DNA of 64,000 nt, from positions 124,001 to 188,000 of the forward strand of contig NIVC01000032.1 in assembly GCA_002269645.1 (NCBI GenBank), given 5' to 3'. A program made the position numbers and the translations under genes. Position 1 is the first letter of the stretch; each line of letters begins with the position of its first letter. This document shows, one piece after another, positions 8,110 through 64,000 of this stretch. The notes below the pieces were generated by a model. The model did not search any database, had not been told where the DNA came from, and saw nothing but the letters and a program-made list of their open reading frames with translations. Origin of the DNA: Macrostomum lignano. Lineage: Eukaryota.

Positions 8110-8128
8110 TAAGTTAAACTTAAAGTGA

Positions 8129-11248: not shown

Positions 11249-11309
11249 CTGAAAATTGGATAATAATAATTACAATTATTTTCCAACATTCCATCTTTAG
11301 ACATCTCAG

Positions 11310-12200: not shown

Positions 12201-12270
12201 AAAATACCTTTCGTGAACTAACCAAACCCCATTTAGATTTCGATGACATTTCAAAGAAAGCTGCACTCAC

Positions 12271-12661: not shown

Positions 12662-12694
12662 CTGGTGAGGTGGGGTGGGGGAAGCTGGCTGCTG

Positions 12695-12695
12695 C

Positions 12696-12761
<66 letters not shown>

Positions 12762-12831
12762 CAGACAGACAGACAGACATAGACAGACAGACAGACACTA
12801 AGACAGGCAGACAGACAGACAACATACAACC

Positions 12832-12864
<33 letters not shown>

Positions 12865-12895
12865 CTTAGACAGACAGACAGACACTAAGACAGGC

Positions 12896-12928
<33 letters not shown>

Positions 12929-12970
12929 CTAAGACAGACAGACAGACAGACAGACAGACAACAGACAACC

Positions 12971-13003
<33 letters not shown>

Positions 13004-13102
13004 CAGAGACAGACAGACAGACAGACAGACAACAGACAGACAGACATAGACAGACAGACAGACAGACACTAAGACAGGCAGACAGACAGACAACATACAA
13101 CC

Positions 13103-13167
<65 letters not shown>

Positions 13168-13178
13168 CTAAGACAGGC

Positions 13179-13215
<37 letters not shown>

Positions 13216-13218
13216 CTA

Positions 13219-13252
<34 letters not shown>

Positions 13253-13359
13253 CAGACAACCAGACAGACAGACAGACAGACAGACAGACACTAAGACAGA
13301 CAGACAGATGGACAGACAGACACAGATAGACAGACAGACACTAAGACAGACAGACAGAC

Positions 13360-13394
<35 letters not shown>

Positions 13395-13456
13395 TAGACA
13401 GACAAATAGACAGACAGACAGACAGACAAATAGACAGACAGACAGACAGACAGACA
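12695..13456. repeat. Interrupted (GACA)n microsatellite filling an 813-bp intron
   Basis: (GACA)n with CTAA, CAACCA, CATACAAC, GATA interruptions; a ~270-bp internal duplication (CATAGAC at ~12778 and ~13045; CATACAAC at ~12823 and ~13094). Confidence 0.95.
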
Positions 13457-13474
13457 CAAAATCCGAGAGCTCAC

Positions 13475-13921
13475 CAGGCACCCTCAGCAGGGTGAAGTTG
13501 GACACCTGTCCGTGATGAGACTCTGCATCAGACGGGATGAGCGGCCAGCTGAGCGGCACAGTGAGCAGGTAGATGCCGCCCAGCACAAAGAAAGGCAGAC
13601 CGAAGCCGCCCCAGCCGTACAGAACGCCGCCAACAGCCGGTCCTAGTACGGCGCCAATGCCGCAGAAAGTCTCAGCAATGCCAAACACCTGAGACACGTT
13701 GTCGCCAAACTCTTGCGCTATGATAACAAACGCGGCGGTTGTATAGGAAGCGAAGCCCCAAGCTGTGGTTATTCGTATTGCAAAGCAATAAATAATGAAC
13801 ATGAGACCGCCGTCCCGGCTAGGCATATGATCCAAGGCGCCAAATAGTATAGTGGCGCAACCGCCTAAGAAGGCGCCAGATAGGAAGAGGAACTTCACGC
13901 CGGCAGGCTTCATCATGGCGC
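13475..13921 (-). CDS. SLC18B1: SLC18B1-like transporter, first exon visible in the window (TM3-TM6)
   Basis: CATTTTTTAG|GC GCC ATG ATG AAG ... CCT G|GTGAGC; 447 nt, phase 1 in and out; AGVKFLFLSGAFLGGCATILFGALDHMP...CFAIR...ETFCGIGAVLGPAVGGVLYGWGGFGLPFFVLG closely matches SLC18B1 IGAKFMFVAG...TILFGVLD...ETFSGLGLILGPPVGGFLY...YEVPF (recalled sequence). TM1-2 and the start codon are not in the window. Confidence 0.9.
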
Positions 13922-14102
13922 CTAAAAAATGAGATTCAGTATGAATTTTGTTTGCTTTTTTAAAATTAAGGTAGCAATTTACTTGTACTGTTTTTTACTG
14001 TTAGTAGTTCAGTGAAAAATAGATTTTTTTAAATATACTCAAGTCCTTTGAAACTTTACAATAACAATCCGGCCCGTTCTTAAGGTTTATGTCTTTTCTC
14101 AG

Positions 14103-17100
14103 CTCTCTGGGGAGATGCTATCTGGGGATGCTTGCTATCTGGGGAGATGCTATCTGGGGATGCTTGCTATCTGGGGAGATGCTATCTGGGGATGCTTGCT
14201 ATCTGGGGAGATGCTATCTGGGGATGCTTGCTATCTGGGGAGATGCTATCTGGGGATGCTTGCTATCTGGGGAGATGCTATCTGGGGATGCTTGCTATCT
14301 GGGGAGATGCTTGCTATCTGGGGAGATGCTATCTGGGGATGCTTGCTATCTGGGGAGATGCTATCTGGGGATGCTTGCTATCTGGGGATGCTTGCTATCT
14401 GGGGAGATGCTATCTGGGGATGCTTGCTATCTGGGGAGATGCTATCTGGGGATGCTTGCTATCTGGGGAGATGCTATCTGGGGATGCTTGCTATCTGGGG
14501 AGATGCTATCTGGGGATGCTTGCTATCTGGGGAGATGCTATCTGGGGATGCTTGCTATCTGGGGAGATGCTATCTGGGGATACTTGCTATCTGGGGTAAT
14601 GCTATCTGGGGATACTTGCTATCTGGGGAGATGCTATCGGGGGATGCTTGCTATCTGGGGATGCTTGCTATCTGGGGATGCTTGCTATCTGGGGAGATGC
14701 TTGCTATCTGGGTGGATGCTTGCTATCTGGGGAGATGCTTGCTATCTGGGGGGATGCTTGCTATCTGGGGGATGCTTGCTATCTGGGGGGATGCTTGCTA
14801 TCTGGGGGGATGCTTGCTATCTGAGGGGATGCTTGCTATCTGGGGAGATGCTTGCTATCTGGGTGGATGCTTGCTATCTGGGGAGATGCTTGCTATCTGG
14901 GTGGATGCTTGCTATCTGGGGAGATGCTTGCTATCTGGGTGGATGCTTGCTATCTGGGGAGATGCTTGCTATCTGGGTGGATGCTTGGATTGCTTGCTAT
15001 CTGGGGGATGCTTGCTATCTGGGGAGATGCTTGCTATCTGGGGATGCTTGCTCTCTGGGAGATGCTTGGATTGCTTGCTATCTGGGGAGATGCTTGGATT
15101 GCTTGCTATCTGGGGAGATGCTTGCTATCTGGGGATGCTTGCTATCTGGGTGGATGCTTGGATTGCTTGCTATCTGGGGATGCTTGCTATCTGGGGATGC
15201 TTGCTATCTGGGGATGCTTGCTATCTGGGGATGCTTGCTATCTGGGGATGCTTGCTATCTGGGGATGCTTGCTATCTGGGTGGATGCTTGGATTGCTTGC
15301 TATCTGGGGATGCTTGCTATCTGGGGAGATGCTTGCTATCTGGGGAGATGCTTGCTATCTGGGTGAATGCTTGGATTGCTTGCTATCTGGGGATGCTTGC
15401 TATCTGGGGATGCTTGCTATCTGGGGAGATGCTTGCTATCTGGGGAGATGCTTGCTATCTGGGGAGATGCTTGCTATCTGGGGAGATGCTTGCTATCTGG
15501 GGATGCTTGCTATCTGGGTGGATGCTTGCTATCTGGGGAGATGCTTGCTATCTGGGTGGATGCTTGCTATCTGGGGGGATGCTTGCTATCTGGGGAGATG
15601 CTTGCTATCTGGGTGGATGCTTGCTATCTGGGGAGATGCTTGCTATCTGGGTGGATGCTTGCTATCTGGGGAGATGCTTGCTATCTGGGTGGATGCTTGG
15701 ATTGCTTGCTATCTGGGGGGATGCTTGCTATCTGGGGAGATGCTTGCTATCTGGGGATGCTTGCTCTCTGGGGAGATGCTTGGATTGCTTGCTATCTGGG
15801 GAGATGCTTGGATTGCTTGCTATCTGGGGAGATGCTTGCTATCTGGGGATGCTTGCTATCTGGGTGGATGCTTGGATTGCTTGCTATCTGGGGATGCTTG
15901 CTATCTGGGGATGCTTGCTATCTGGGGATGCTTGCTATCTGGGGATGCTTGCTATCTGGGGATGCTTGCTATCTGGGGATGCTTGCTATCTGGGGATGCT
16001 TGCTATCTGGGGATGCTTGCTATCTGGGGATGCTTGCTATCTGGGGATGCTTGCTATCTGGGTGGATGCTTGGATTGCTTGCTATCTGGGGATGCTTGCT
16101 ATCTGGGGATGCTTGCTATCTGGGGAGATGCTTGCTATCTGGGGAGATGCTTGCTATCTGGGTGGATGCTTGGATTGCTTGCTATCTGGGGATGCTTGCT
16201 ATCTGGGGATGCTTGCTATCTGGGGAGATGCTTGCTATCTGGGGAGATGCTTGCTATCTGGGGAGATGCTTGCTATCTGGGGATACTTGCTATCTGGGTG
16301 GATGCTTGCTATCTGGGGAGATGCTTGCTATCTGGGTGGATGCTTGCTATCTGGGGGGATGCTTGCTATCTGGGGGGATGCTTGCTATCTGGGTGGATGC
16401 TTGGATTGCTTGCTATCTGGGGGATGCTTGCTATCTGGGGAGATGCTTGCTATCTGGGGATGCTTGCTATCTGGGGAGATGCTTGCTATCTGGGGATGCT
16501 TGCTATCTGGGTGGATGCTTGCTATCTGGGGAGATGCTTGCTATCTGGGTGGATGCTTGCTATCTGGGGGGATGCTTGCTATCTGGGGGGATGCTTGCTA
16601 TCTCGGAAGAGGCTTGCTATCTGGGGATGCTTGCTATCTGGGGAGATGCTTGCTATCTGGGGAGATGCTTGCTATCTGGGTGGATGCTTGCTATCTGGGG
16701 GGATGCTTGCTATCTAGGGGGATGCTTCCTATCTCGGGAGATGCTTGCTATCTGGGGATGCTTGCTATCTGGGGAGATGCTTGCTATCTGGGTGGATGCT
16801 TGCTATCTGGGGAGATGCTTGCTATCTGGGGATGCTTGCTATCTGGGGGATGCTTGCTATCTGGGGAGATGCTTGCTATCTGGGGATGCTTGCTATCTGG
16901 GTGGATGCTTGCTATCTGGGGAGATGCTTGCTATCTGGGGGGATGCTTGCTATCTGGGGGATGCTTGCTATCTGGGGGGATGCTTGCTATCTCGGGAGAT
17001 GCTTGCTATCTGGGGATGCTTGCTATCTGGGGAGATGCTTGCTATCTGGGGATGCTTGCTATCTGGGGATGCTTGCTATCTGGGGAGATGCTTGCTATCT

Positions 17101-20100
17101 GGGGGATGCTTGCTATCTGGGGGGGTGCTTGCTATCTGGGGAGATGCTTGCTATCTGGGTGGATGCTTGCCATCTGGGGAGATGCTTGCTATCTGGGTGG
17201 ATGCTTGCTATCTGGGTGGATGCTTGCTATCTGGGGAGATGCTTGCTATCTGGGGGGATGCTTGCTATCTGGGGGGATGCTTGCTATCTGGGGGGATGCT
17301 TGCTATCTGGGGGGATGCTTGCTATCTGGGAAGATGCTTGCTATCTGGGTGGATGCTTGCTATCTGGGGAGATGCTTGCTATCTGGGTGGATGCTTGCTA
17401 TCTGGGGAGATGCTTGCTATCTGGGTGGATGCTTGGATTGCTTGCTATCTGGGGGGATGCTTGCTATCTGGGGAGATGCTTGCTATCTGGGGATGCTTGC
17501 TCTCTGGGGAGATGCTTGGATTGCTTGCTATCTGGGGAGATGCTTGCTATCTGTGGATGCTTGCTATCTGGGTGGATGCTTGGATTGCTTGCTATCTGGG
17601 GATGCTTGCTATCTGGGGATGCTTGCTATCTGGGGATGCTTGCTATCTGGGGATGCTTGCTATCTGGGGATGCTTGCTATCTGGGGATGCTTGCTATCTG
17701 GGGATGCTTGCTATCTGGGTGGATGCTTGGATTGCTTGCTATCTGGGGATGCTTGCTATCTGGGGATGCTTGCTATCTGGGGAGATGCTTGCTATCTGGG
17801 GAGATGCTTGCTATCTGGGTGGATGCTTGGATTGCTTGCTATCTGGGGATGCTTGCTATCTGGGGATGCTTGCTATCTGGGGAGATGCTTCCTATCTGGG
17901 GAGATGCTTGCTATCTGGGGAGATGCTTGCTATCTGGGGATGCTTGCTATCTGGGGATGCTTGCTATCTGGGGAGATGCTTGCTATCTGGGGAGATGCTT
18001 GCTATCTGGGGAGATGCTTGCTATCTGGGTGGATGCTTGCCATCTGGGGAGATGCTTGCTATCTGGGTGGATGCTTGCTATCTGGGTGGATGCTTGCTAT
18101 CTGGGGTGATGCTTGCTATCTGGGTGGATGCTTGCTATCTGGGGTGATGCTTGCTATCTAGGGGGATGCTTGCTATCTCGGGAGATGCTTGCTATCTGGG
18201 GATGCTTGCTATCTGGGGAGATGCTTGCTATCTGGGTGGATGCTTGCTATCTGGGGAGATGCTTGCTATCTGGGGATGCTTGCTATCTGGGGGGATGCTT
18301 GCTATCTGGGGAAATGCTTGCTATCTGGGGGGATGCTTGCTATCTGGGGGGATGCTTGCTATCTGGGTGGATGCTTGGATTGCTTGCTATCTGGGGGGAT
18401 GCTTGCTATCTGGGGAGATGCTTGCTATCTGGGGATGCTTGCTATCTGGGGAGATGCTTGCTATCTGGGGATGCTTGCTATCTGGGTGGATGCTTGCTAT
18501 CTGGGGAGATGCTTGCTATCTGGGTGGATGCTTGCTATCTGGGGGGATGCTTGCTATCTGGGGGGATGCTTGCTATCTCGGGAGATGCTTGCTATCTGGG
18601 GATGCTTGCTATCTGGGGAGATGCTTGCTATCTGGGGAGATGCTTGCTATCTGGGTGGATGCTTGCTATCTGGGGGGATGCTTGCTATCTGGGGAGATGC
18701 TTGCTATCTCGGGAGATGCTTGCTATCTGGGGATGCTTGCTATCTGGGGAGATGCTTGCTATCTGGGTGGATGCTTGCTATCTGGGGAGATGCTTGCTAT
18801 CTGGGGATGCTTGCTATCTGGGGGGATGCTTGCTATCTGGGGAGATGCTTGCTATCTGGGGATGCTTGCTATCTGGGTGGATGCTTGCTATCTGGGGAGA
18901 TGCTTGCTATCTGGGGGATGCTTGCTATCTGGGGGGATGCTTGCTATCTGGGGGGATGCTTGCTATCTCGGGAGATGCTTGCTATCTGGGGATGCTTGCT
19001 ATCTGGGGAGATGCTTGCTATCTGGGGATGCTTGCTATCTGGGGATGCTTGCTATCTGGGGAGATGCTTGCTATCTGGGGGGGTGCTTGCTATCTGGGGA
19101 GATGCTTGCTATCTGGGTGGATGCTTGCTATCTGGGGAGATGCTTGCTATCTGGGTGGATGCTTGCTATCTGGGTGGATGCTTGCTATCTGGGGAGATGC
19201 TTGCTATCTGGGGGGATGCTTGCTATCTGGGGGATGCTTGCTATCTGGGGGGATGCTTGCTATCTGGGGGATGCTTGCTATCTGGGAGATGCTTGCTATC
19301 TGGGTGGATGCTTGCTATCTGGGGAGATGCTTGCTATCTGGGTGGATGCTTGCTATCTGGGGAGATGCTTGCTATCTGGGTGGATGCTTGGATTGCTTGC
19401 TATCTGGGGGGATGCTTGCTATCTGGGGAGATGCTTGCTATCTGGGGATGCTTGCTCTCTGGGGAGATGCTTGGATTGCTTGCTATCTGGGGAGATGCTT
19501 GCTATCTGTGGATGCTTGCTATCTGGGTGGATGCTTGGATTGCTTGCTATCTGGGGATGCTTGCTATCTGGGGATGCTTGCTATCTGGGGATGCTTGCTA
19601 TCTGGGGATGCTTGCTATCTGGGGATGCTTGCTATCTGGGGATGCTTGCTATCTGGGGATGCTTGCTATCTGGGTGGATGCTTGGATTGCTTGCTATCTG
19701 GGGATGCTTGCTATCTGGGGATGCTTGCTATCTGGGGATGCTTGCTATCTGGGGAGATGCTTGCTATCTGGGGAGATGCTTGCTATCTGGGTGGATGCTT
19801 GGATTGCTTGCTATCTGGGGATGCTTGCTATCTGGGGATGCTTGCTATCTGGGGAGATGCTTCCTATCTGGGGAGATGCTTGCTATCTGGGGAGATGCTT
19901 GCTATCTGGGGATGCTTGCTATCTGGGGATGCTTGCTATCTGGGGAGATGCTTGCTATCTGGGGAGATGCTTGCTATCTGGGGAGATGCTTGCTATCTGG
20001 GTGGATGCTTGCTATCTGGGGAGATGCTTGCTATCTGGGTGGATGCTTGCTATCTGGGTGGATGCTTGCTATCTGGGGTGATGCTTGCTATCTGGGTGGA

Positions 20101-23100
20101 TGCTTGCTATCTGGGGATGCTTGCTATCTGGGGGATGCTTGCTATCTGGGAGATGCTTGCTATCTGGGGATGCTTGCTATCTGGGGAGATGCTTGCTATC
20201 TGGGGGATGCTTGCTATCTGGGGAGATGCTTGCTATCTGGGGATGCTTGCTATCTGGGGGATGCTTGCTATCTGGGGAGATGCTTGCTATCTGGGGGATG
20301 CTTGCTATCTGGGGGATGCTTGCTATCTGGGTGGATGCTTGGATTGCTTGCTATCTGGGGGGATGCTTGCTATCTGGGAGATGCTTGCTATCTGGGGATG
20401 CTTGCTATCTGGGGAGATGCTTGCTATCTGGGGATGCTTGCTATCTGGGTGGATGCTTGCTATCTGGGGAGATGCTTGCTATCTGGGTGGATGCTTGCTA
20501 TCTGGGGGATGCTTGCTATCTGGGGGATGCTTGCTATCTGGGAGATGCTTGCTATCTGGGGATGCTTGCTATCTGGGGAGATGCTTGCTATCTGGGGAGA
20601 TGCTTGCTATCTGGGTGGATGCTTGCTATCTGGGGGATGCTTGCTATCTGGGGATGCTTGCTATCTCGGGAGATGCTTGCTATCTGGGGATGCTTGCTAT
20701 CTGGGGAGATGCTTGCTATCTGGGTGGATGCTTGCTATCTGGGGAGATGCTTGCTATCTGGGGATGCTTGCTATCTGGGGGATGCTTGCTATCTGGGGAG
20801 ATGCTTGCTATCTGGGGATGCTTGCTATCTGGGGATGCTTGCTATCTGGGGAGATGCTTGCTATCTGGGGGATGCTTGCTATCTGGGGGATGCTTGCTAT
20901 CTGGGGGATGCTTGCTATCTGGGAGATGCTTGCTATCTGGGGATGCTTGCTATCTGGGGATGCTTGCTATCTGGGGATGCTTGCTATCTGGGGATGCTTG
21001 CTATCTGGGGAGATGCTTGCTATCTGGGGGATGCTTGCTATCTGGGGGGTGCTTGCTATCTGGGGAGATGCTTGCTATCTGGGTGGATGCTTGCTATCTG
21101 GGGAGATGCTTGCTATCTGGGGGATGCTTGCTATCTGGGGGATGCTTGCTATCTGGGGAGATGCTTGCTATCTGGGGGATGCTTGCTATCTGGGGGATGC
21201 TTGCTATCTGGGGGATGCTTGCTATCTGGGGGATGCTTGCTATCTGGGAGATGCTTGCTATCTGGGGGATGCTTGCTATCTGGGGAGATGCTTGCTATCT
21301 GGGGGATGCTTGCTATCTGGGGAGATGCTTGCTATCTGGGTGGATGCTTGGATTGCTTGCTATCTGGGGGATGCTTGCTATCTGGGGAGATGCTTGCTAT
21401 CTGGGGATGCTTGCTATCTGGGGGATGCTTGCTATCTGGGGGATGCTTGCTATCTGGGAGATGCTTGCTATCTGGGGATGCTTGCTATCTGGGGAGATGC
21501 TTGCTATCTGGGGATGCTTGCTATCTGGGGATGCTTGCTATCTGGGGAGATGCTTGCTATCTGGGGGATGCTTGCTATCTGGGGGATGCTTGCTATCTGG
21601 GGGATGCTTGCTATCTGGGATGCTTGCTATCTGGGTGGATGCTTGCTATCTGGGGGATGCTTGCTATCTGGGGGATGCTTGCTATCTGGGGATGCTTGCT
21701 ATCTGGGAGATGCTTGCTATCTGGGGATGCTTGCTATCTGGGGAGATGCTTGCTATCTGGGAGATGCTTGCTATCTGGGGATGCTTGCTATCTGGGGAGA
21801 TGCTTGCTATCTGGGGATGCTTGCTATCTGGGGATGCTTGCTATCTGGGGAGATGCTTGCTATCTGGGGATGCTTGCTATCTGGGTGGATGCTTGCTATC
21901 TGGGGGATGCTTGCTATCTGGGGGATGCTTGCTATCTGGGAGATGCTTGCTATCTGGGGGATGCTTGCTATCTGGGAGATGCTTGCTATCTGGGGGATGC
22001 TTGCTATCTGGGGGATGCTTGCTATCTGGGGGATGCTTGCTATCTGGGAGATGCTTGCTATCTGGGGGATGCTTGCTATCTGGGGAGATGCTTGCTATCT
22101 GGGGAGATGCTTGCTATCTGGGGGATGCTTGCTATCTGGGGGATGCTTGCTATCTGGGGGATGCTTGCTATCTGGGAGATGCTTGCTATCTGGGGATGCT
22201 TGCTATCTGGGGAGATGCTTGCTATCTGGGGATGCTTGCTATCTGGGGGGATGCTTGCTATCTCGGGAGATGCTTGCTATCTGGGAATGCTTGCTATCTG
22301 GGGAGATGCTTGCTATCTGGGGGATGCTTGCTATCTGGGGGGATGCTTGCTATCTGGGGGGATGCTTGCTATCTGGGGGGATGCTTGCTATCTGGGGAGA
22401 TGCTTGCTATCTGGGGATGCTTGCTATCTGGGGAGATGCTTGGATTGCTTGCTATCTGGGGAGATGCTTGGATTGCTTGCTATCTGGGGAGATGCTTGCT
22501 ATCTGGGATGCTTGCTATCTGGGGATGCTTGCTATCTGGGGATGCTTGCTATCTGGGGATGCTTGCTATCTGGGGATGCTTGCTATCTGGGGATGCTTGC
22601 TATCTGGGGATGCTTGCTATCTGGGTGGATGCTTGGATTGCTTGCTATCTGGGGATGCTTGCTATCTGGGGATGCTTGCTATCTGGGGAGATGCTTGCTA
22701 TCTGGGGAGATGCTTGCTATCTGGGTGGATGCTTGGATTGCTTGCTATCTGGGGATGCTTGCTATCTGGGGATGCTTGCTATCTGGGGAGATGCTTGCTA
22801 TCTGGGGAGATGCTTGCTATCTGGGGAGATGCTTGCTATCTGGGGATGCTTGCTATCTGGGGATGCTTGCTATCTGGGGAGATGCTTGCTATCTGGGGAG
22901 ATGCTTGCTATCTGGGGAGATGCTTGCTATCTGGGGATGCTTGCTATCTGGGGGATGCTTGCTATCTGGGGAGATGCTTGCTATCTGGGGATGCTTGCTA
23001 TCTGGGGGATGCTTGCTATCTGGGGGATGCTTGCTATCTGGGTGGATGCTTGGATTGCTTGCTATCTGGGGGATGCTTGCTATCTGGGGAGATGCTTGCT

Positions 23101-26100
23101 ATCTGGGGATGCTTGCTATCTGGGGAGATGCTTGCTATCTGGGGATGCTTGCTATCTGGGTGATGCTTGCTATCTGGGGAGATGCTTGCTATCTGGGGGA
23201 TGCTTGCTATCTGGGGGATGCTTGCTATCTGGGGGATGCTTGCTATCTGGGAGATGCTTGCTATCTGGGGATGCTTGCTATCTGGGGAGATGCTTGCTAT
23301 CTGGGGAGATGCTTGCTATCTGGGGGATGCTTGCTATCTGGGGGATGCTTGCTATCTGGGGATGCTTGCTATCTGGGAGATGCTTGCTATCTGGGGATGC
23401 TTGCTATCTGGGGAGATGCTTGCTATCTGGGTGGATGCTTGCTATCTGGGGAGATGCTTGCTATCTGGGGATGCTTGCTATCTGGGGGATGCTTGCTATC
23501 TGGGGAGATGCTTGCTATCTGGGGATGCTTGCTATCTGGGTGGATGCTTGCTATCTGGGGAGATGCTTGCTATCTGGGGGATGCTTGCTATCTGGGGATG
23601 CTTGCTATCTGGGGGATGCTTGCTATCTGGGAGATGCTTGCTATCTGGGGATGCTTGCTATCTGGGGAGATGCTTGCTATCTGGGGATGCTTGCTATCTG
23701 GGGATGCTTGCTATCTGGGATGCTTGCTATCTGGGGGATGCTTGCTATCTGGGGATGCTTGCTATCTGGGGAGATGCTTGCTATCTGGGGATGCTTGCTA
23801 TCTGGGGAGATGCTTGCTATCTGGGGATGCTTGCTATCTGGGGATGCTTGCTATCTGGGGGATGCTTGCTATCTGGGGGATGCTTGCTATCTGGGGGATG
23901 CTTGCTATCTGGGGGATGCTTGCTATCTGGGGGATGCTTGCTATCTGGGATGCTTGCTATCTGGGGATGCTTGCTATCTGGGGAGATGCTTGCTATCTGG
24001 GGATGCTTGCTATCTGGGGGATGCTTGCTATCTGGGGAGATGCTTGCTATCTGGGGATGCTTGCTATCTGGGGGATGCTTGCTATCTGGGGAGATGCTTG
24101 CTATCTGGGGATGCTTGCTATCTGGGGGATGCTTGCTATCTGGGGGATGCTTGCTATCTGGGGATGCTTGCTATCTGGGGATGCTTGCTATCTGGGGAGA
24201 TGCTTGCTATCTGGGGATGCTTGCTATCTGGGGATGCTTGCTATCTGGGGAGATGCTTGCTATCTGGGGATGCTTGCTATCTGGGGGATGCTTGCTATCT
24301 GGGGGATGCTTGCTATCTGGGGATGCTTGCTATCTGGGGGATGCTTGCTATCTGGGGGATGCTTGCTATCTGGGGGATGCTTGCTATCTGGGGGATGCTT
24401 GCTATCTGGGAGATGCTTGCTATCTGGGGATGCTTGCTATCTGGGGAGATGCTTGCTATCTGGGAGATGCTTGCTATCTGGGGATGCTTGCTATCTGGGG
24501 ATGCTTGCTATCTGGGGATGCTTGCTATCTGGGGATGCTTGCTATCTGGGGAGATGCTTGCTATCTGGGGATGCTTGCTATCTGGGGGATGCTTGCTATC
24601 TGGGGGATGCTTGCTATCTGGGGATGCTTGCTATCTGGGAGATGCTTGCTATCTGGGGGATGCTTGCTATCTGGGGAGATGCTTGCTATCTGGGGGATGC
24701 TTGCTATCTGGGGGATGCTTGCTATCTGGGGGATGCTTGCTATCTGGGAGATGCTTGCTATCTGGGGGATGCTTGCTATCTGGGGAGATGCTTGCTATCT
24801 GGGGAGATGCTTGCTATCTGGGGGATGCTTGCTATCTGGGGGATGCTTGCTATCTGGGGATGCTTGCTATCTGGGAGATGCTTGCTATCTGGGGATGCTT
24901 GCTATCTGGGGAGATGCTTGCTATCTGGGGATGCTTGCTATCTGGGGATGCTTGCTATCTGGGAGATGCTTGCTATCTGGGGATGCTTGCTATCTGGGGA
25001 TGCTTGCTATCTGGGGGATGCTTGCTATCTGGGGGATGCTTGCTATCTGGGGATGCTTGCTATCTGGGGATGCTTGCTATCTGGGGAGATGCTTGCTATC
25101 TGGGGATGCTTGCTATCTGGGGAGATGCTTGGATTGCTTGCTATCTGGGGATGCTTGCTTGCTATCTGGGGAGATGCTTGCTATCTGGGGATGCTTGCTA
25201 TCTGGGTGGATGCTTGGATTGCTTGCTATCTGGGGGATGCTTGCTATCTGGGGAGATGCTTGCTATCTGGGGATGCTTGCTATCTGGGGAGATGCTTGCT
25301 ATCTGGGGATGCTTGCTATCTGGGGAGATGCTTGCTATCTGGGGATGCTTGCTATCTGGGGAGATGCTTGCTATCTGGGGATGCTTGCTATCTGGGGAGA
25401 TGCTTGCTATCTGGGGAGATGCTTGCTATCTGGGGGATGCTTGCTATCTGGGGAGATGCTTGCTATCTGGGGATGCTTGCTATCTGGGGAGATGCTTGCT
25501 ATCTGGGTGGATGCTTGCTATCTGGGGGATGCTTGCTATCTGGGGGATGCTTGCTATCTGGGAGATGCTTGCTATCTGGGTGGATGCTTGCTATCTGGGG
25601 AGATGCTTGCTATCTGGGGATGCTTGCTATCTGGGGGATGCTTGCTATCTGGGGGATGCTTGCTATCTGGGGATGCTTGCTATCTGGGAGATGCTTGCTA
25701 TCTGGGGATGCTTGCTATCTGGGGAGATGCTTGCTATCTGGGGATGCTTGCTATCTGGGGGATGCTTGCTATCTGGGAGATGCTTGCTATCTGGGGATGC
25801 TTGCTATCTGGGGAGATGCTTGCTATCTGGGGGATGCTTGCTATCTGGGGGGATGCTTGCTATCTGGGGATGCTTGCTATCTGGGGGATGCTTGCTATCT
25901 GGGAGATGCTTGCTATCTGGGGGATGCTTGCTATCTGGGGAGATGCTTGCTATCTGGGGGATGCTTGCTATCTGGGGAGATGCTTGCTATCTGGGGGATG
26001 CTTGGATGCTTGCTATCTGGGGGATGCTTGCTATCTGGGGAGATGCTTGCTATCTGGGTGGATGCTTGCTATCTGGGGAGATGCTTGGATTGCTTGCTAT

Positions 26101-53100: not shown

Positions 53101-56100
53101 GTGGATGCTTGGATTGCTTGCTATCTGGGGGATGCTTGCTATCTGGGGAGATGCTTGCTATCTGGGGATGCTTGCTCTCTGGGGAGATGCTTGGATTGCT
53201 TGCTATCTGGGGAGATGCTTGGATGCTTGCTATCTGGGGAGATGCTTGCTATCTGGGGATGCTTGCTATCTGGGTGGATGCTTGGATTGCTTGCTATCTG
53301 GGGATGCTTGCTATCTGGGGATGCTTGCTATCTGGGGATGCTTGCTATCTGGGGATGCTTGCTATCTGGGGATGGATTGCTATCTGGGGATGCTTGCTAT
53401 CTGGGGATGCTTGCTATCTGGGTGGATGCTTGGATTGCTTGCTATCTGGGGATGCTTGCTATCTGGGTGGATGCTTGGATTGCTTGCTATCTGGGGATGC
53501 TTGCTATCTGGGGATGTTGCTATCTGGGGAGATGCTTGCTATCTGGGAGATGCTTGCTATCTGGGTGGGATGCTTGGATTGCTTGCTATCTGGGGATGCT
53601 TGCTATCTGGGATGCTTGCTATCTGGGGAGATGCTTGCTATCTGGGGAGATGCTTGCTATCTGGGGGATGCTTGCTATCTGGGGAGATGCTTGCTATCTG
53701 GGGATGCTTGCTATCTGGGTGGATGCTTGCTATCTGGGTGGATGCTTGCTATCTGGGTGGATGCTTGCTATCTGGGGGATGCTTGCTATCTGGGGGATGC
53801 TTGCTATCTGGGGGATGCTTGGATTGCTTGCTATCTGGGGGGATGCTTGCTATCTGGGGAGATGCTTGCTATCTGGGGATGCTTGCTATCTGGGGAGATG
53901 CTTGCTATCTGGGGATGCTTGCTATCTGGGTGGATGCTTGCTATCTGGGGAGATGCTTGCTATCTGGGTGGATGCTTGCTATCTGGGGGGATGCTTGCTA
54001 TCTGGGGGATGCTTGCTATCTCGGGGGATGCTTGCTATCTGGGGATGCTTGCTATCTGGGGAGATGCTTGCTATCTGGGAGATGCTTGCTATCTGGGTGA
54101 TGCTTGCTATCTGGGGAGATGCTTGCTATCTGGGGGATGCTTGCTATCTGGGGGGATGCTTGCTATCTGGGGATGCTTGCTATCTGGGGAGATGCTTGCT
54201 ATCTGGGTGGATGCTTGCTATCTGGGGAGATGCTTGCTATCTGGGGATGCTTGCTATCTGGGGATGCTTGCTATCTGGGCTGGAGATGCTTGCTATCTGG
54301 GGATGCTTGCTATCTGGGTGGATGCTTGCTATCTGGGGAGATGCTTGCTATCTGGGGGATGCTTGCTATCTGGGGGGATGCTTGCTATCTGGGGAGATGC
54401 TTGCTATCTCGGGAGATGCTTGCTATCTGGGGATGCTTGCTATCTGGGGAGATGCTTGCTATCTGGGGATGCTTGCTATATGGGGATGCTTGCTATCTGG
54501 GGAGATGCTTGCTATCTGGGGGGATGCTTGCTATCTGGGGGGGGGGTGCTTGCTATCTGGGGAGATGCTTGCTATCTGGGTGGATGCTTGCCATCTGGGG
54601 AGATGCTTGCTATCTGGGTGGATGCTTGCTATCTGGGTGGATGCTTGCTATCTGGGGTGATGCTTGCTATCTGGGGGGATGCTTGCTATCTGGGGGATGC
54701 TTGCTATCTGGGAGATGCTTGCTATCTGGGTGGATGCTTGCTATCTGGGGAGATGCTTGCTATCTGGGTGGATGCTTGCTATCTGGGGATGCTTGCTATC
54801 TGGGTGGATGCTTGGATTGCTTGCTATCTGGGGGATGCTTGCTATCTGGGGAGATGCTTGCTATCTGGGGATGCTTGCTCTCTGGGAGATGCTTGGATTG
54901 CTTGCTATCTGGGGAGATGCTTGGATTGCTTGCTATCTGGGGAGATGCTTGCTATCTGGGGATGCTTGCTATCTGGGTGGATGCTTGGATTGCTTGCTAT
55001 CTGGGGGATGCTTGCTATCTGGGGAGATGCTTGCTATCTGGGGATGCTTGCTATCTGGGGAGATGCTTGCTATCTGGGGATGCTTGCTATCTGGGGAGAT
55101 GCTTGCTATCTGGGGATGCTTGCTATCTGGGGGATGCTTGCTATCTGGGGGATGCTTGCTATCTGGGGGATGCTTGCTATCTGGGGGATGCTTGCTATCT
55201 GGGGAGATGCTTGCTATCTGGGTGGATGCTTGCTATCTGGGGAGATGCTTGCTATCTGGGTGGATGCTTGCTATCTGGGGAGATGCTTGCTATCTGGGTG
55301 GATGCTTGGATTGCTTGCTATCTGGGGGATGCTTGCTATCTGGGGAGATGCTTGCTATCTGGGGATGCTTGCTCTCTGGGGAGATGCTTGGATTGCTTGC
55401 TATCTGGGGAGATGCTTGGATTGCTTGCTATCTGGGGAGATGCTTGCTATCTGGGGATGCTTGCTATCTGGGGAGATGCTTGGATTGCTTGCTATCTGGG
55501 GATGCTTGCTATCTGGGGATGCTTGCTATCTGGGGATGCTTGCTATCTGGGGATGCTTGCTATCTGGGGATGCTTGCTATCTGGGTGGATGCTTGGATTG
55601 CTTGCTATCTGGGGATGCTTGCTATCTGGGGATGCTTGCTATCTGGGGAGATGCTTGCTATCTGGGAGATGCTTGCTATCTGGGTGGATGCTTGGATGCT
55701 TGCTATCTGGGGATGCTTGCTATCTGGGGATGCTTGCTATCTGGGGAGATGCTTGCTATCTGGGGAGATGCTTGCTATCTGGGGAGATGCTTGCTATCTG
55801 GGGAGATGCTTGCTATCTGGGGATGCTTGCTATCTGGGTGGATGCTTGCTATCTGGGGAGATGCTTGCTATCTGGGTGGATGCTTGCTATCTGGGGGGAT
55901 GCTTGCTATCTGGGGAGATGCTTGCTATCTGGGTGGATGCTTGCTATCTGGGGAGATGCTTGCTATCTGGGTGGATGCTTGCTATCTGGGGAGATGCTTG
56001 CTATCTGGGTGGATGCTTGGATTGCTTGCTATCTGGGGGGATGCTTGCTATCTGGGGAGATGCTTGCTATCTGGGGATGCTTGCTATCTGGGGAGATGCT

Positions 56101-59100
56101 TGGATTGCTTGCTATCTGGGGAGATGCTTGGATTGCTTGCTATCTGGGGAGATGCTTGCTATCTGGGGATGCTTGCTATCTGGGTGGATGCTTGGATTGC
56201 TTGCTATCTGGGGATGCTTGCTATCTGGGGATGCTTGCTATCTGGGGATGCTTGCTATCTGGGGATGCTTGCTATCTGGGGATGCTTGCTATCTGGGGAT
56301 GCTTGCTATCTGGGGATGCTTGCTATCTGGGTGGATGCTTGGATTGCTTGCTATCTGGGGATGCTTGCTATCTGGGTGGATGCTTGGATTGCTTGCTATC
56401 TGGGGATGCTTGCTATCTGGGGATGCTTGCTATCTGGGGAGATGCTTGCTATCTGGGGGGATGCTTGCTATCTCGGGAGATGCTTGCTATCTGGGTGGAT
56501 GCTTGCTATCTGGGGAGATGCTTGCTATCTGGGGAGATGCTTGCTAGCTGGGTGGATGCTTGCTATCTGGGGGGATGCTTGCTATCTGGGGGGATGCTTG
56601 CTATCTCGGGAGATGCTTGCTATCTGGGGATGCTTGCTATCTGGGGAGATGCTTGCTATCTGGGATGCTTGCTATCTGGGGGATGCTTGCTATCTGGGAG
56701 ATGCTTGCTATCTGGGGATGCTTGCTATCTGGGGAGATGCTTGCTATCTGGGGGATGCTTGCTATCTGGGGAGATGCTTGCTATCTGGGTGGATGCTTGC
56801 TATCTGGGGAGATGCTTGCTATCTGGGTGGATGCTTGGATGCTTGCTATCTGGGGGATGCTTGCTATCTGGGGAGATGCTTGCTATCTGGGGATGCTTGC
56901 TCTCTGGGGAGATGCTTGGATTGCTTGCTATCTGGGGAGATGCTTGGATTGCTTGCTATCTGGGGAGATGCTTGCTATCTGGGGATGCTTGCTATCTGGG
57001 TGGATGCTTGGATTGCTTGCTATCTGGGGGGATGCTTGCTATCTGGGGAGATGCTTGCTATCTGGGGATGCTTGCTATCTGGGGAGATGCTTGCTATCTG
57101 GGGATGCTTGCTATCTGGGGAGATGCTTGCTATCTGGGGATGCTTGCTATCTGGGGGGATGCTTGCTATCTGGGGGGATGCTTGCTATCTGGGGGGATGC
57201 TTGCTATCTGGGGGGATGCTTGCTATCTGGGGAGATGCTTGCTATCTGGGGGGATGCTTGCTATCTGGGGAGATGCTTGCTATCTGGGTGGATGCTTGCT
57301 ATCTGGGGAGATGCTTGCTATCTGGGTGGATGCTTGGATTGCTTGCTATCTGGGGGATGCTTGCTATCTGGGAGATGCTTGCTATCTGGGGATGCTTGCT
57401 CTCTGGGGAGATGCTTGGATTGCTTGCTATCTGGGGAGATGCTTGGATTGCTTGCTATCTGGGGAGATGCTTGCTATCTGGGGATGCTTGCTATCTGGGT
57501 GGATGCTTGGATTGCTTGCTATCTGGGGATGCTTGCTATCTGGGGATGCTTGCTATCTGGGGATGCTTGCTATCTGGGGATGCTTGCTATCTGGGGATGC
57601 TTGCTATCTGGGTGGATGCTTGGATTGCTTGCTATCTGGGGATGCTTGCTATCTGGGGATGCTTGCTATCTGGGGAGATGCTTGCTATCTGGGGAGATGC
57701 TTGCTATCTGGGTGGATGCTTGGATTGCTTGCTATCTGGGGATGCTTGCTATCTGGGGATGCTTGCTATCTGGGAGATGCTTGCTATCTGGGGAGATGCT
57801 TGCTATCTGGGAGATGCTTGCTATCTGGGGAGATGCTTGCTATCTGGGGATGCTTGCTATCTGGGTGGATGCTTGCTATCTGGGGAGATGCTTGCTATCT
57901 GGGTGGATGCTTGCTATCTGGGGGGATGCTTGCTATCTGGGGAGATGCTTGCTATCTGGGTGGATGCTTGCTATCTGGGGAGATGCTTGCTATCTGGGTG
58001 GATGCTTGCTATCTGGGGAGATGCTTGCTATCTGGGTGGATGCTTGGATTGCTTGCTATCTGGGGGGATGCTTGCTATCTGGGGAGATGCTTGCTATCTG
58101 GGGATGCTTGCTCTCTGGGGAGATGCTTGGATTGCTTGCTATCTGGGGAGATGCTTGGATTGCTTGCTATCTGGGGAGATGCTTGCTATCTGGGGATGCT
58201 TGCTATCTGGGTGGATGCTTGGATTGCTTGCTATCTGGGGATGCTTGCTATCTGGGGATGCTTGCTATCTGGGGATGCTTGCTATCTGGGGATGCTTGCT
58301 ATCTGGGGATGCTTGCTATCTGGGGATGCTTGCTATCTGGGGATGCTTGCTATCTGGGTGGATGCTTGGATTGCTTGCTATCTGGGGATGCTTGCTATCT
58401 GGGTGGATGCTTGGATTGCTTGCTATCTGGGGATGCTTGCTATCTGGGGATGTTTGCTATCTGGGGAGATGCTTGCTATCTGGGGAGATGCTTGCTATCT
58501 GGGTGGATGCTTGGATTGCTTGCTATCTGGGGATGCTTGCTATCTGGGGATGCTTGCTATCTGGGGAGATGCTTGCTATCTGGGGAGATGCTTGCTATCT
58601 GGGGAGATGCTTGCTATCTGGGGAGATGCTTGCTATCTGGGGATGCTTGCTATCTGGGTGGATGCTTGCTATCTGGGGAGATGCTTGCTATCTGGGTGGA
58701 TGCTTGCTATCTGGGGGGATGCTTGCTATCTGGGGGGATGCTTGCTATCTGGGTGGATGCTTGGATTGCTTGCTATCTGGGGGGATGCTTGCTATCTGGG
58801 GAGATGCTTGCTATCTGGGGATGCTTGCTATCTGGGGAGATGCTTGCTATCTGGGGATGCTTGCTATCTGGGTGGATGCTTGCTATCTGGGGAGATGCTT
58901 GCTATCTGGGTGGATGCTTGCTATCTGGGGGGATGCTTGCTATCTGGGGGGATGCTTGCTATCTCGGGAGATGCTTGCTATCTGGGGATGCTTGCTATCT
59001 GGGGAGATGCTTGCTATCTGGGGAGATGCTTGCTATCTGGGTGGATGCTTGCTATCTGGGGGGATGCTTGCTATCTGGGGATGCTTGCTATCTGGGAGAT

Positions 59101-62100
59101 GCTTGCTATCTGGGGATGCTTGCTATCTGGGGAGATGCTTGCTATCTGGGTGGATGCTTGCTATCTGGGGAGATGCTTGCTATCTGGGGATGCTTGCTAT
59201 CTGGGGGGATGCTTGCTATCTGGGGAGATGCTTGCTATCTGGGGATGCTTGCTATCTGGGTGGATGCTTGCTATCTGGGGAGATGCTTGCTATCTGGGGG
59301 GATGCTTGCTATCTGGGGGGATGCTTGCTATCTGGGGGGATGCTTGCTATCTCGGGAGATGCTTGCTATCTGGGGATGCTTGCTATCTGGGGAGATGCTT
59401 GCTATCTGGGGATGCTTGCTATATGGGGATGCTTGCTATCTGGGGAGATGCTTGCTATCTGGGGGGATGCTTGCTATCTGGGGGGGTGCTTGCTATCTGG
59501 GGAGATGCTTGCTATCTGGTGGATGCTTGCCATCTGGGGAGATGCTTGCTATCTGGGTGGATGCTTGCTATCTGGGTGGATGCTTGCTATCTGGGGTGAT
59601 GCTTGCTATCTGGGGGGATGCTTGCTATCTGGGGGATGCTTGCTATCTGGGGGGATGCTTGCTATCTGGGTATGCTTGCTATCTGGGGATGCTTGCTATC
59701 TGGGGGGATGCTTGCTATCTCGGGAGATGCTTGCTATCTGGGGATGCTTGCTATCTGGGTGGATGCTTGCTATCTGGGGAGATGCTTGCTATCTGGGTGG
59801 ATGCTTGCTATCTGGGGGGATGCTTGCTATCTGGGGAGATGCTTGGATTGCTTGCTATCTGGGGAGATGCTTGGATTGCTTGCTATCTGGGGAGATGCTT
59901 GCTATCTGGGGATGCTTGCTATCTGGGTGGATGCTTGGATTGCTTGCTATCTGGGGGGATGCTTGCTATCTGGGGAGATGCTTGCTATCTGGGGATGCTT
60001 GCTATCTGGGGAGATGCTTGCTATCTGGGGATGCTTGCTATCTGGGGAGATGCTTGCTATCTGGGGATGCTTGCTATCTGGGGGGATGCTTGCTATCTGG
60101 GGGGATGCTTGCTATCTGGGGGATGCTTGCTATCTGGGGGGATGCTTGCTATCTGGGGAGATGCTTGCTATCTGGGTGGATGCTTGCTATCTGGGGAGAT
60201 GCTTGCTATCTGGGTGGATGCTTGCTATCTGGGGAGATGCTTGCTATCTGGGTGGATGCTTGGATTGCTTGCTATCTGGGGGGATGCTTGCTATCTGGAG
60301 AGATGCTTGCTATCTGGGGATGCTTGCTCTCTGGGGAGATGCTTGGATTGCTTGCTATCTGGGGAGATGCTTGGATTGCTTGCTATCTGGGGAGATGCTT
60401 GCTATCTGGGGATGCTTGCTATCTGGGTGGATGCTTGGATTGCTTGCTATCTGGGGATGCTTGCTATCTGGGGATGCTTGCTATCTGGGGATGCTTGCTA
60501 TCTGGGGATGCTTGCTATCTGGGGATGCTTGCTATCTGGGTGGATGCTTGGATTGCTTGCTATCTGGGGATGCTTGCTATCTGGGGATGCTTGCTATCTG
60601 GGGAGATGCTTGCTATCTGGGGAGATGCTTGCTATCTGGGTGGATGCTTGGATTGCTTGCTATCTGGGGATGCTTGCTATCTGGGGATGCTTGCTATCTG
60701 GGGAGATGCTTGCTATCTGGGGAGATGCTTGCTATCTGGGGAGATGCTTGCTATCTGGGGAGATGCTTGCTATCTGGGGATGCTTGCTATCTGGGTGGAT
60801 GCTTGCTATCTGGGGAGATGCTTGCTATCTGGGTGGATGCTTGCTATCTGGGGGGATGCTTGCTATCTGGGGAGATGCTTGCTATCTGGGTGGATGCTTG
60901 CTATCTGGGGAGATGCTTGCTATCTGGGTGGATGCTTGCTATCTGGGGAGATGCTTGCTATCTGGGTGGATGCTTGGATTGCTTGCTATCTGGGGGATGC
61001 TTGCTATCTGGGGAGATGCTTGCTATCTGGGGATGCTTGCTCTCTGGGGAGATGCTTGGATTGCTTGCTATCTGGGGAGATGCTTGGATTGCTTGCTATC
61101 TGGGGAGATGCTTGCTATCTGGGGATGCTTGCTATCTGGGTGGATGCTTGGATTGCTTGCTATCTGGGGATGCTTGCTATCTGGGGATGCTTGCTATCTG
61201 GGGATGCTTGCTATCTGGGGATGCTTGCTATCTGGGGATGCTTGCTATCTGGGGATGCTTGCTATCTGGGGATGCTTGCTATCTGGGTGGATGCTTGGAT
61301 TGCTTGCTATCTGGGATGCTTGCTATCTGGGTGGATGCTTGGATTGCTTGCTATCTGGGGATGCTTGCTATCTGGGGATGCTTGCTATCTGGGGAGATGC
61401 TTGCTATCTGGGGAGATGCTTGCTATCTGGGTGGATGCTTGGATTGCTTGCTATCTGGGGATGCTTGCTATCTGGGGATGCTTGCTATCTGGGGAGATGC
61501 TTGCTATCTGGGGAGATGCTTGCTATCTGGGGAGATGCTTGCTATCTGGGGAGATGCTTGCTATCTGGGGATGCTTGCTATCTGGGTGGATGCTTGCTAT
61601 CTGGGGAGATGCTTGCTATCTGGGTGGATGCTTGCTATCTGGGGGGATGCTTGCTCTCTGGGGGGATGCTTGCTATCTGGGTGGATGCTTGGATTGCTTG
61701 CTATCTGGGGGGATGCTTGCTATCTGGGGAGATGCTTGCTATCTGGGGATGCTTGCTATCTGGGGAGATGCTTGCTATCTGGGGATGCTTGCTATCTGGG
61801 TGGATGCTTGCTATCTGGGGAGATGCTTGCTATCTGGGTGGATGCTTGCTATCTGGGGGATGCTTGCTATCTGGGGGGATGCTTGCTATCTCGGGAGATG
61901 CTTGCTATCTGGGGATGCTTGCTATCTGGGGAGATGCTTGCTATCTGGGGAGATGCTTGCTATCTGGGTGGATGCTTGCTATCTGGGGGGATGCTTGCTA
62001 TCTAGGGGGATGCTTGCTATCTCGGGAGATGCTTGCTATCTGGGGATGCTTGCTATCTGGGGAGATGCTTGCTATCTGGGTGGATGCTTGCTATCTGGGG

Positions 62101-64000
62101 AGATGCTTGCTATCTGGGGATGCTTGCTATCTGGGGGGATGCTTGCTATCTGGGGAGATGCTTGCTATCTGGGGATGCTTGCTATCTGGGTGGATGCTTG
62201 CTATCTGGGGAGATGCTTGCTATCTGGGGGGATGCTTGCTATCTGGGGGATGCTTGCTATCTGGGGGATGCTTGCTATCTCGGGAGATGCTTGCTATCTG
62301 GGGATGCTTGCTATCTGGGGAGATGCTTGCTATCTGGGGATGCTTGCTATATGGGGATGCTTGCTATCTGGGGAGATGCTTGCTATCTGGGGGATGCTTG
62401 CTATCTGGGGGGGGGGGGTGCTTGCTATCTGGGGAGATGCTTGCTATCTGGGTGGATGCTTGCCATCTGGGGAGATGCTTGCTATCTGGGTGGATGCTTG
62501 CTATCTGGGTGGATGCTTGCTATCTGGGGTGATGCTTGCTATCTGGGGGGATGCTTGCTATCTGGGGGGATGCTTGCTATCTGGGGGGATGCTTGCTATC
62601 TGGGTATGCTTGCTATCTGGGGATGCTTGCTATCTGGGGGGATGCTTGCTATCTCGGGAGATGCTTGCTATCTGGGGATGCTTGCTATCTGGGTGGATGC
62701 TTGGATTGCTTGCTATCTGGGGATGCTTGCTATCTGGGGATGCTTGCTATCTGGGGAGATGCTTGCTATCTGGGGAGATGCTTGCTATCTGGGGAGATGC
62801 TTGCTATCTGGGGAGATGCTTGCTATCTGGGGATGCTTGCTATCTGGGTGGATGCTTGCTATCTGGGGAGATGCTTGCTATCTGGGTGGATGCTTGGATT
62901 GCTTGCTATCTGGGGGGATGCTTGCTATCTGGGGAGATGCTTGCTATCTGGGGATGCTTGCTCTCTGGGGAGATGCTTGGATTGCTTGCTATCTGGGGAG
63001 ATGCTTGGATTGCTTGCTATCTGGGGAGATGCTTGCTATCTGGGGATGCTTGCTATCTGGGTGGATGCTTGGATTGCTTGCTATCTGGGGATGCTTGCTA
63101 TCTGGGGATGCTTGCTATCTGGGGATGCTTGCTATCTGGGGATGCTTGCTATCTGGGGATGCTTGCTATCTGGGGATGCTTGCTATCTGGGGATGCTTGC
63201 TATCTGGGTGGATGCTTGGATTGCTTGCTATCTGGGGATGCTTGCTATCTGGGTGGATGCTTGGATTGCTTGCTATCTGGGGATGCTTGCTATCTGGGGA
63301 TGCTTGCTATCTGGGGAGATGCTTGCTATCTGGGGAGATGCTTGCTATCTGGGTGGATGCTTGGATTGCTTGCTATCTGGGGATGCTTGCTATCTGGGGA
63401 TGCTTGCTATCTGGGGAGATGCTTGCTATCTGGGAGATGCTTGCTATCTGGGGAGATGCTTGCTATCTGGGGAGATGCTTGCTATCTGGGGATGCTTGCT
63501 ATCTGGGTGGATGCTTGCTATCTGGGGAGATGCTTGCTATCTGGGTGGATGCTTGCTATCTGGGGGGATGCTTGCTATCTGGGGGGATGCTTGCTATCTG
63601 GGTGGATGCTTGGATTGCTTGCTATCTGGGGGGATGCTTGCTATCTGGGGAGATGCTTGCTATCTGGGGATGCTTGCTATCTGGGGAGATGCTTGCTATC
63701 TGGGGATGCTTGCTATCTGGGTGGATGCTTGCTATCTGGGGAGATGCTTGCTATCTGGGTGGATGCTTGCTATCTGGGGGGATGCTTGCTATCTGGGGGG
63801 ATGCTTGCTATCTCGGGAGATGCTTGCTATCTGGGGATGCTTGCTATCTGGGGAGATGCTTGCTATCTGGGGAGATGCTTGCTATCTGGGTGGATGCTTG
63901 CTATCTGGGGGATGCTTGCTATCTAGGGGATGCTTGCTATCTCGGGAGATGCTTGCTATCTGGGGATGCTTGCTATCTGGGGAGATGCTTGCTATCTGGG
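14103..64000. repeat. Giant G-rich satellite array (~50 kb, continues past the window end), core ATGCTTGCTATCTGGGG with 17/18/19-bp and 26-28-bp variants and kb-scale higher-order repeats
   Basis: Uninterrupted head-to-tail monomers: core plus nothing, AG, G or GG; core with GGGTGG ending; extended form ATGCTTGGATTGCTTGCTATCTGGGG. Roughly 2,700 monomers (length divided by ~18.5 bp, an estimate). No unique sequence seen inside. Confidence 0.98.

Follow-up and report, generated by a model that had tools for sequence, protein, structure and literature searches.

A possible satellite-filled giant intron of at least 50 kb in an SLC18B1-like transporter gene of Macrostomum lignano

Does a gene of the flatworm Macrostomum lignano continue on the far side of a satellite array of some 50 kb? 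The question is raised by a 64,000-nucleotide stretch of contig NIVC01000032.1 (GenBank assembly GCA_002269645.1, positions 124,001 to 188,000 of the forward strand), which is referred to here as the window and whose own numbering is used throughout. The minus strand of the window carries four exons of an SLC18B1-like transporter gene that lacks its 5' end, and the sequence upstream of these exons passes, after a short unique spacer, into a satellite that runs off the window end. An earlier note on this DNA had proposed that the satellite fills a giant intron of an intact gene. That the locus is a working giant intron is given a probability of roughly 0.25 to 0.3. The fuller claim, of a flatworm gene with no sex chromosome involved whose transcription traverses at least 50 kb of satellite and whose transcript is cis-spliced despite competing spliced leader (SL) machinery, is likewise doubtful and stands at about one chance in four. 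Among the readings considered, the likeliest puts the missing 5' exons in cis on the minus strand past the array, at somewhat short of even odds.

The transporter gene and its upstream exons

Between positions 13921 and 10891 of the minus strand, four exons are joined by canonical GT-AG junctions into a continuous 357-codon frame with a TGA stop. The parts of the gene are given below in transcript order (a slash marks a splice junction; TM, transmembrane segment).

13921-13475, minus strand: exon A, 447 nt, with phase-1 acceptor ttttttag/GC and donor G/gtgagc, encoding TM3-TM6
12662-13474, minus strand: intron A-B, 813 bp, of which 762 bp are a (CAGA)n microsatellite on the plus strand, (TCTG)n in gene sense
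12271-12661, minus strand: exon B, 391 nt, with acceptor caccag/GC and donor GA/gtgagt, encoding GILMMCW...YMLDAA
11249-12270, minus strand: intron B-C, 1022 bp, of which 900 bp are a 25-bp unit in about 36 copies (Tandem Repeats Finder (TRF), 11291-12190)
11174-11248, minus strand: exon C, 75 nt, encoding EEAGLPDDVSVHGAIGGLWGSAYAF, followed by the 120-bp intron C-D
10891-11053, minus strand: coding part of exon D, encoding GEFVGPIAGGFLVD...RTGTNFS and the stop, TM11-12, with the TGA stop at 10893-10891

Exon A is entered through an acceptor at 13922/13921 of the minus strand (...ctcattttttag/GCGCCATGATGAAG), and the frame takes one upstream base (x/GC), which makes the junction phase 1. The exon begins at the TM2-TM3 loop motif, and the window thus encodes TM3-TM12. 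The product of exon A, (G/S)AMMKPAGVKF...LLRVP, is 99% identical to residues 78-226 of the M. lignano protein A0A1I8H9H4. For exon B, an alternative acceptor (ctgcag at about 12690) was ruled out, as the A0A1I8H9H4 sequence fixes the junction caccag/GC at 12661. The phase-1 acceptor at about TM3 that the earlier note had described was thus recovered, and its statement that the other introns are about 1 kb or less agrees with the three lengths listed above.

Scanning the window protein against Pfam gave a match to MFS_1 (PF07690) of 112.9 bits (gathering cutoff 33.4, E 2e-32) that spans profile positions 62-329 of 347. The top matches from outside Macrostomum are SLC18B1 or SLC18B1-like proteins of Hydra and Branchiostoma, with 33-38% identity over approximately 83-98% of the query; eight hits (P0002-P0008 and P0010 in our numbering; E 1e-21 to 3e-35) bear one of these two names. 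The alignments of these Hydra and Branchiostoma proteins to the window protein begin at a G-K-x-M-x-x-x-G-V-K-F motif. By the annotation of its nearest relatives, rather than by a tree, the gene is an SLC18B1-like MFS transporter, as had been proposed. Glycine-rich motifs are conserved in the alignment. In a six-sequence alignment made up of A0A1I8H9H4 and five homologues (the window protein is not in it), all 32 of the 32 invariant columns fall in the part of A0A1I8H9H4 that matches exons A and B. No disabling mutation was found in the retained coding part (357 open codons, all four junctions canonical). The earlier description of the gene as intact therefore holds for TM3-TM12, which is open and canonically spliced; for the whole gene it is not established, and A0A1I8H9H4 skips TM2. 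Compared with SLC18B1, the vesicular polyamine transporter, the window encodes TM3-TM12 only and the M. lignano protein model has TM1 without TM2.

The closest protein to the window copy is A0A1I8H9H4 itself (UniProt, 98.5-99.3% identical over exons A and B), from which it differs at two of 277 residues (Ala in the window for Ser, and Asn for Asp). A0A1I8H9H4 carries 77 N-terminal residues, including TM1 (RKRKLLLVSLCLGELCSNVMLSIMAPFFPSEAESKGVS), joined to AMMKPAG, and the join is a split Ser codon, A/GC, placed exactly at the acceptor at 13921. On the evidence of this model, the acceptor of exon A is used in cis in a related M. lignano gene, and exon A is an internal exon. Since A0A1I8H9H4 joins a TM1 exon at this acceptor, 5' exons exist in the species and lie outside the window; the TM1-bearing N-terminus gave no tblastn match anywhere in the 64 kb.

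Relative to the five homologues, A0A1I8H9H4 lacks exactly 22 residues, which correspond to TM2, and it has Ser at the exon junction where all homologues carry Gly. This gap would fit a skipped 66-nt phase 1-1 exon for TM2, and such an exon, if it ended in G, would make the split codon GGC (G/GC) and restore the conserved Gly. A small TM2 exon may accordingly exist and have been missed or skipped in the A0A1I8H9H4 model. Gene predictors typically miss small exons within very long or poorly assembled introns, and the interval upstream of exon A may also be long or badly assembled at the A0A1I8H9H4 locus. The A0A1I8H9H4 model is partial at both ends and stops exactly at the end of exon B, before the intron with the 25-bp repeat. 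In Hydra, TM2 has a 96-nt exon of its own, with a 16-kb intron on one side and a 5-kb intron on the other.

Two tandem repeats in and beside the gene were noted separately. The (CAGA)n tract (12695-13456) yields long spurious reading frames on both strands. Approximately 220 bp downstream of the transporter stop, a 51-bp unit is repeated 12.8 times at 96% identity (10018-10672); this array, whose spurious reading frames reach 335 residues, is probably in or beside the 3' untranslated region of the transporter.

The satellite array and its junction with the gene

Upstream of exon A, the sequence was divided into the following features.

13922-14115, minus strand: spacer, unique, 194 bp, 70.1% A+T, ending in a polypyrimidine tract and the acceptor AG
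14045-14108, plus strand: dispersed element, 64 bp, CCTTTGAAACTTTAC...TTTATGTCTTTTCTCAGCTCTCT, adjoining the array, 123 bp upstream of the acceptor
14116-14620, plus strand: array edge zone with a 15-bp variant, TATCTGGGGAGATGC, in 13 copies, alternating with the 17-mer as a 32-bp dimer
14116-64000, plus strand: satellite array, 49,885 bp, running off the window end (TRF, monomer census and skew)

TRF reported the array with a score of 62192 and approximately 2,830 copies at period 19, and a monomer census, made by splitting at a fixed anchor, counted 2,579 monomers. The main units on the plus strand are TATCTGGGGATGCTTGC (17 bp, 801 copies), TATCTGGGGAGATGCTTGC (19 bp, 655 copies), an 18-mer (345 copies) and 28-bp variants. 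The most abundant of these, TATCTGGGGATGCTTGC, corresponds to the unit CCCCAGATAGCAAGCAT of the earlier note after reverse complementation and rotation; on the minus strand, in gene sense, the unit reads GCAAGCATCCCCAGATA. Anchors are never more than 45 bp apart, so no exon is hidden inside the array. The spacer has stop codons in all three sense frames and therefore holds no TM2 exon, and a hidden TM2 exon was ruled out in both places. The earlier note had placed the TM1-2 exons outside the window and had described the array as pure satellite to its end; both statements, like all the others that it makes on the sequence, are borne out. GC skew stays within +0.36 to +0.39 across all 2-kb bins, and this constancy means that the array has a single orientation.

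Higher-order repeats of approximately 1.9-2.0 kb were found within the array; a copy of 1,990 bp is 92-97% identical to others. No exact repeat as long as 800 bp occurs. Given this absence and the 3-8% divergence, accurate reads of 15-20 kb could place the copies uniquely. The centre of the array (approximately 45-52 kb) is more diverged, with up to 28% unique 40-mers and many unclassified monomers, compared with 0-7% unique 40-mers in most other bins and 10% at the array edge. The left (16-20 kb) and right (58-64 kb) parts have a common higher-order pattern. A literature search with the satellite unit gave chance primer matches only, and nothing relevant turned up in the literature on satellite DNA of M. 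lignano or on a chromosome-scale assembly.

The gene-sense strand of the array contains three GT dinucleotides, where approximately 1047 would be expected from base composition, along with 8140 AG and no AATAAA or ATTAAA. This content is compatible with an intron and is not evidence of selection. Selection for intron compatibility was considered as the cause of the GT scarcity and rejected, as a 17-nt unit would lack GT by chance in an estimated 70% or so of cases.

The spacer between gene and satellite (194 bp, closed by stops in every frame) matches the AT-rich non-coding stretch of about 180 bp in the earlier description. It would be the 3' end of a putative intron or, alternatively, an outron or promoter region. 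At the array edge, the 15-bp variant is confined to the edge zone and an offset of 32 bp is the commonest nearest-neighbour offset. An edge-only 15-mer is as expected of the edge of an old, poorly homogenised array.

The array adjoins a 64-bp element of which a second copy was found on Mlig_3_7 scaffold NIVC01000200.1 (locus L004, 6142-6205, minus strand; 87.5% identity by blastn across the 64 bp, complete over the final 23 bp). The terminal 23-mer of the element is unique in the window, and no match to it would be expected by chance. At NIVC01000200.1, a different array, (CTCTCCT)n-like and approximately 190 bp long, starts at the same base. Just before the element in L004 stands CAGCTCTGGGGG, a sequence similar to the junction of element end and array in the window. 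The final bases of the element, GCTCTCT, are also similar, together with the GGGG after them, to the satellite unit GCTATCTGGGG. The array may thus have been seeded at the end of the 64-bp element. Judged by the edge variants, the start at an element end and the internal divergence, the gene-satellite junction looks biological and not like a mis-join; a natural-looking junction leaves room for error deeper in the array.

If the array is intronic, the satellite would sit in the intron preceding exon A, and the TM1 exon and the putative 66-nt TM2 exon would lie past it on the same strand. The intron would then measure at least 50 kb, against an average of 1.1-1.4 kb for M. lignano introns (PMC5730564), and 49.9 kb of uninterrupted satellite far exceeds a usual intron if the interval is one. 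The array would have grown in place from the end of the dispersed element, 123 bp away from the acceptor on its upstream side. In an expressed copy, RNA polymerase II would make from the array a C-rich transcript, (GCAAGCAUCCCCAGAUA)n, which would offer no cryptic 5' splice sites, recursive splice sites or poly(A) signals, and an upstream donor would be spliced directly to 13921. Removal in one step is suggested by the three GU in 49.9 kb, which leave no cryptic donors or recursive sites.

Growth within the intron would be the simplest history, since it needs no rearrangement and matches the other introns of the gene: its two other long introns are 88-94% tandem repeat (762 bp out of 813 and 900 bp out of 1022). 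Simple and tandem repeats account for 15% of the M. lignano genome (PMC5730564). Outside the satellite, positions 1-14115 of the window are 28.5% tandem repeat, spread over six arrays whose units are unrelated. The position of the 5' exons in cis past the array, its origin in place, its transcription and its splicing-out are inferred. Of the giant-intron interpretation put forward earlier, the internal exon, the acceptor used in cis and the natural junction are upheld; 5' exons in cis, transcription of the array and its removal by splicing are conjectural.

Competing explanations and the wider neighbourhood

Several observations count against a giant intron. The array shows no loss of homogeneity up to the window end, and its far flank lies outside the window. 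The acceptor of exon A is TAG, whereas the three other acceptors of the gene are CAG, the acceptor motif enriched in the species (PMC8629364). The transcriptome-based GenBank annotation of the Mlig_3_7 assembly holds no protein for the gene, and hence gives no sign of its expression. Neither the locus of A0A1I8H9H4 nor that of the window was found in the indexed assemblies. A0A1I8H9H4, the sole protein model for the gene, lacks TM2, and with only two of 277 residues different from the window copy it may be another copy that has a short intron. The Hydra intron is 2-3 codons off the M. lignano position and in phase 0 rather than phase 1, and the idea that it marks an ancient shared position was rejected on these grounds. 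Lastly, as 180 Mb of the genome is duplicated at 95% identity or more, an open frame is no proof of function. Exact protein matching for A0A1I8H9H4 and for a 567-residue NHL protein of the window returned no locus on record, and a protein search with the 77-residue N-terminus of A0A1I8H9H4 returned nothing, not even A0A1I8H9H4 itself, which reflects a word-index limit.

Genome duplication and SL trans-splicing had not been weighed in the earlier note, and a young truncated copy would look just as intact as the window copy does. The window copy could be a 5'-truncated recent duplicate that arose by a break in the intron before exon A, for instance through an exchange involving satellite, and now abuts a satellite block; the complete working copy (A0A1I8H9H4) would lie elsewhere, and the window copy would be a young pseudogene. 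We regard this as a serious rival, at somewhat under one chance in three. It draws on the genome background (PMC5730564), in which 180 Mb of non-repetitive blocks are duplicated at 95% identity or more, a chromosome-scale duplication is recent, and extra large chromosomes are present in the DV1 line that was sequenced. It also draws on the two amino acids that separate A0A1I8H9H4 from the window copy. An array of at least 50 kb, homogeneous to the window end, would also fit a large heterochromatic block. The lack of an Mlig_3_7 protein for the gene points the same way, and the neighbouring NHL/B-box family has many dispersed paralogues, which marks the region as prone to duplication. However, the 357 codons and four exons show no stop, frameshift or splice-site defect, although a young copy may lack these. 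A truncated duplicate also requires a rearrangement, whereas growth within the intron does without one and agrees with what is seen elsewhere in the gene. Diverged edge variants and a start at an element end are expected of an array born on site, and the missing TM2 in A0A1I8H9H4 suggests that its own locus is abnormal or poorly assembled at the same intron.

Under two further explanations the 50-kb intron would be unreal or unnecessary. The array may be an assembly artefact, either a mis-join within satellite or an over-expanded or chimeric array, so that the distance or the linkage does not exist. Long arrays of short units are classic mis-join sites, earlier M. lignano assemblies were fragmented by repeats (PMC5730564), and the window ends inside the array with the far side unanchored. 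Such an error is nevertheless improbable in view of the junction, with its edge-specific variants and a start at the element end that recurs at an independent locus, the uniform orientation of the array, and higher-order copies that differ by 3-8% with no exact repeat of 800 bp. Alternatively, exon A could be the first exon in practice, with transcription starting in the spacer or array and the acceptor at 13921 receiving the 35-nt spliced leader; translation from an ATG at 13916 would give a 356-residue protein without TM1-2. This is an explanation that can coexist with the others, and its chances are slim. SL trans-splicing affects approximately 30-39% of M. lignano genes according to two published estimates (PMC5730564, PMC8629364), and an acceptor without a donor suffices for it. 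With three GT in 49.9 kb of sense strand, a transcript initiated in the array would be a donor-free outron, and 5 nt past the acceptor there is an ATG-ATG pair. Yet the junction, TTTTTTAG/GC, does not conform to the motif enriched at M. lignano trans-splice acceptors, [T/C]TNCAG (PMC8629364), which is an enrichment and not a requirement. The AUG of the spliced leader would open a 3-codon upstream open reading frame (MAP, then stop) that overlaps the ATG, and the exon begins in the middle of the TM2-TM3 loop motif, with its Met residues aligned to internal residues of homologues. A0A1I8H9H4 uses the acceptor at 13921 in cis. We know of no precedent for a working MFS transporter without TM1-2.

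Beyond the transporter and the array, the window contains an intronless NHL-repeat (B-box type) gene of 567 residues (2019-3722, minus strand), faced by a partial NHL paralogue that is cut by the window start (1 to about 750, plus strand). The NHL/B-box family has many M. lignano members with 77-84% protein identity on at least three Mlig_3_7 scaffolds, often paired or clustered, and no annotated family member closely matches the window copy. Six NHL loci of Mlig_3_7 (L002-L007, approximately 130 kb) have only the NHL gene in common with the window; no SLC18B1 exon and no satellite copy was found in them. At 4532-5125, a 65-bp unit is repeated 9.1 times at 98% identity and looks like a very young minisatellite. 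DDE transposase remnants occupy 5650-8004, where 7633-8001 (plus strand) gave a weak DDE_3 match (E 1.8e-4, below the Pfam cutoff). An upstream open reading frame at 5653-5928, which has no Pfam match, flanks together with the DDE_3 remnant a complex 32/42-bp tandem array (6161-7020). An Rfam scan of positions 1-16000 matched no family.

Relation to known giant introns and significance

The closest known systems are the Drosophila genes kl-3, kl-5 and ks-1/ORY, which have satellite-containing gigantic introns that are transcribed through; Blanks and Heph are needed for kl-3 and kl-5 (PMC6508621). In the literature searched, satellite-filled giant introns are known almost only from Drosophila Y fertility genes, and of 16 papers with the term 'intron gigantism' all but a few concern Drosophila or dystrophin. 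As in the Drosophila Y-loop genes, a long tandem array of short units would separate exons in a gene whose other introns are of normal size, and the array would be transcribed in one orientation and then spliced out. The Drosophila introns reach megabases and consist of simple satellites of 5-bp type such as (AATAT)n and (AAGAC)n, whereas the M. lignano array has at least 50 kb of 17-19-bp units with a higher-order structure of approximately 2 kb. The Drosophila genes are Y-linked and encode spermatocyte-specific dyneins, and the present gene encodes a small membrane transporter in a hermaphrodite without a Y. Transcription and dependence on Blanks and Heph have been shown in Drosophila, whereas the likeness here is confined to architecture.

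Two comparisons within M. lignano are also instructive. Like an SL outron acceptor, the acceptor of exon A is preceded on the sense strand by at least 50 kb in which there is no donor; it differs from such acceptors in that [T/C]TNCAG is absent, the exon starts mid-domain in phase 1, and the acceptor is used in cis. Like the repeat-filled ordinary introns of the same gene, of which the neighbouring two are 88-94% tandem repeat, the array may be an extreme of one process, but it is approximately 50-60 times larger and has higher-order structure, which makes it a satellite and not a micro- or minisatellite.

If the array does fill an intron, this would be the first satellite-filled giant intron found in our literature search outside the Drosophila Y fertility genes, and the phenomenon would not be tied to Y degeneration or to spermatocyte-specific programmes. 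M. lignano would then be a tractable, transgenic system in which to study the handling of tens of kilobases of satellite by polymerase and spliceosome, as well as a natural test of cis-splicing outcompeting SL trans-splicing over a long distance. If the window copy is instead a truncated duplicate, it would be one more sign of tandem-repeat growth and duplication shaping a repeat-rich genome. Either way, a 64-bp element at which different arrays start at two loci hints at how arrays may be seeded.

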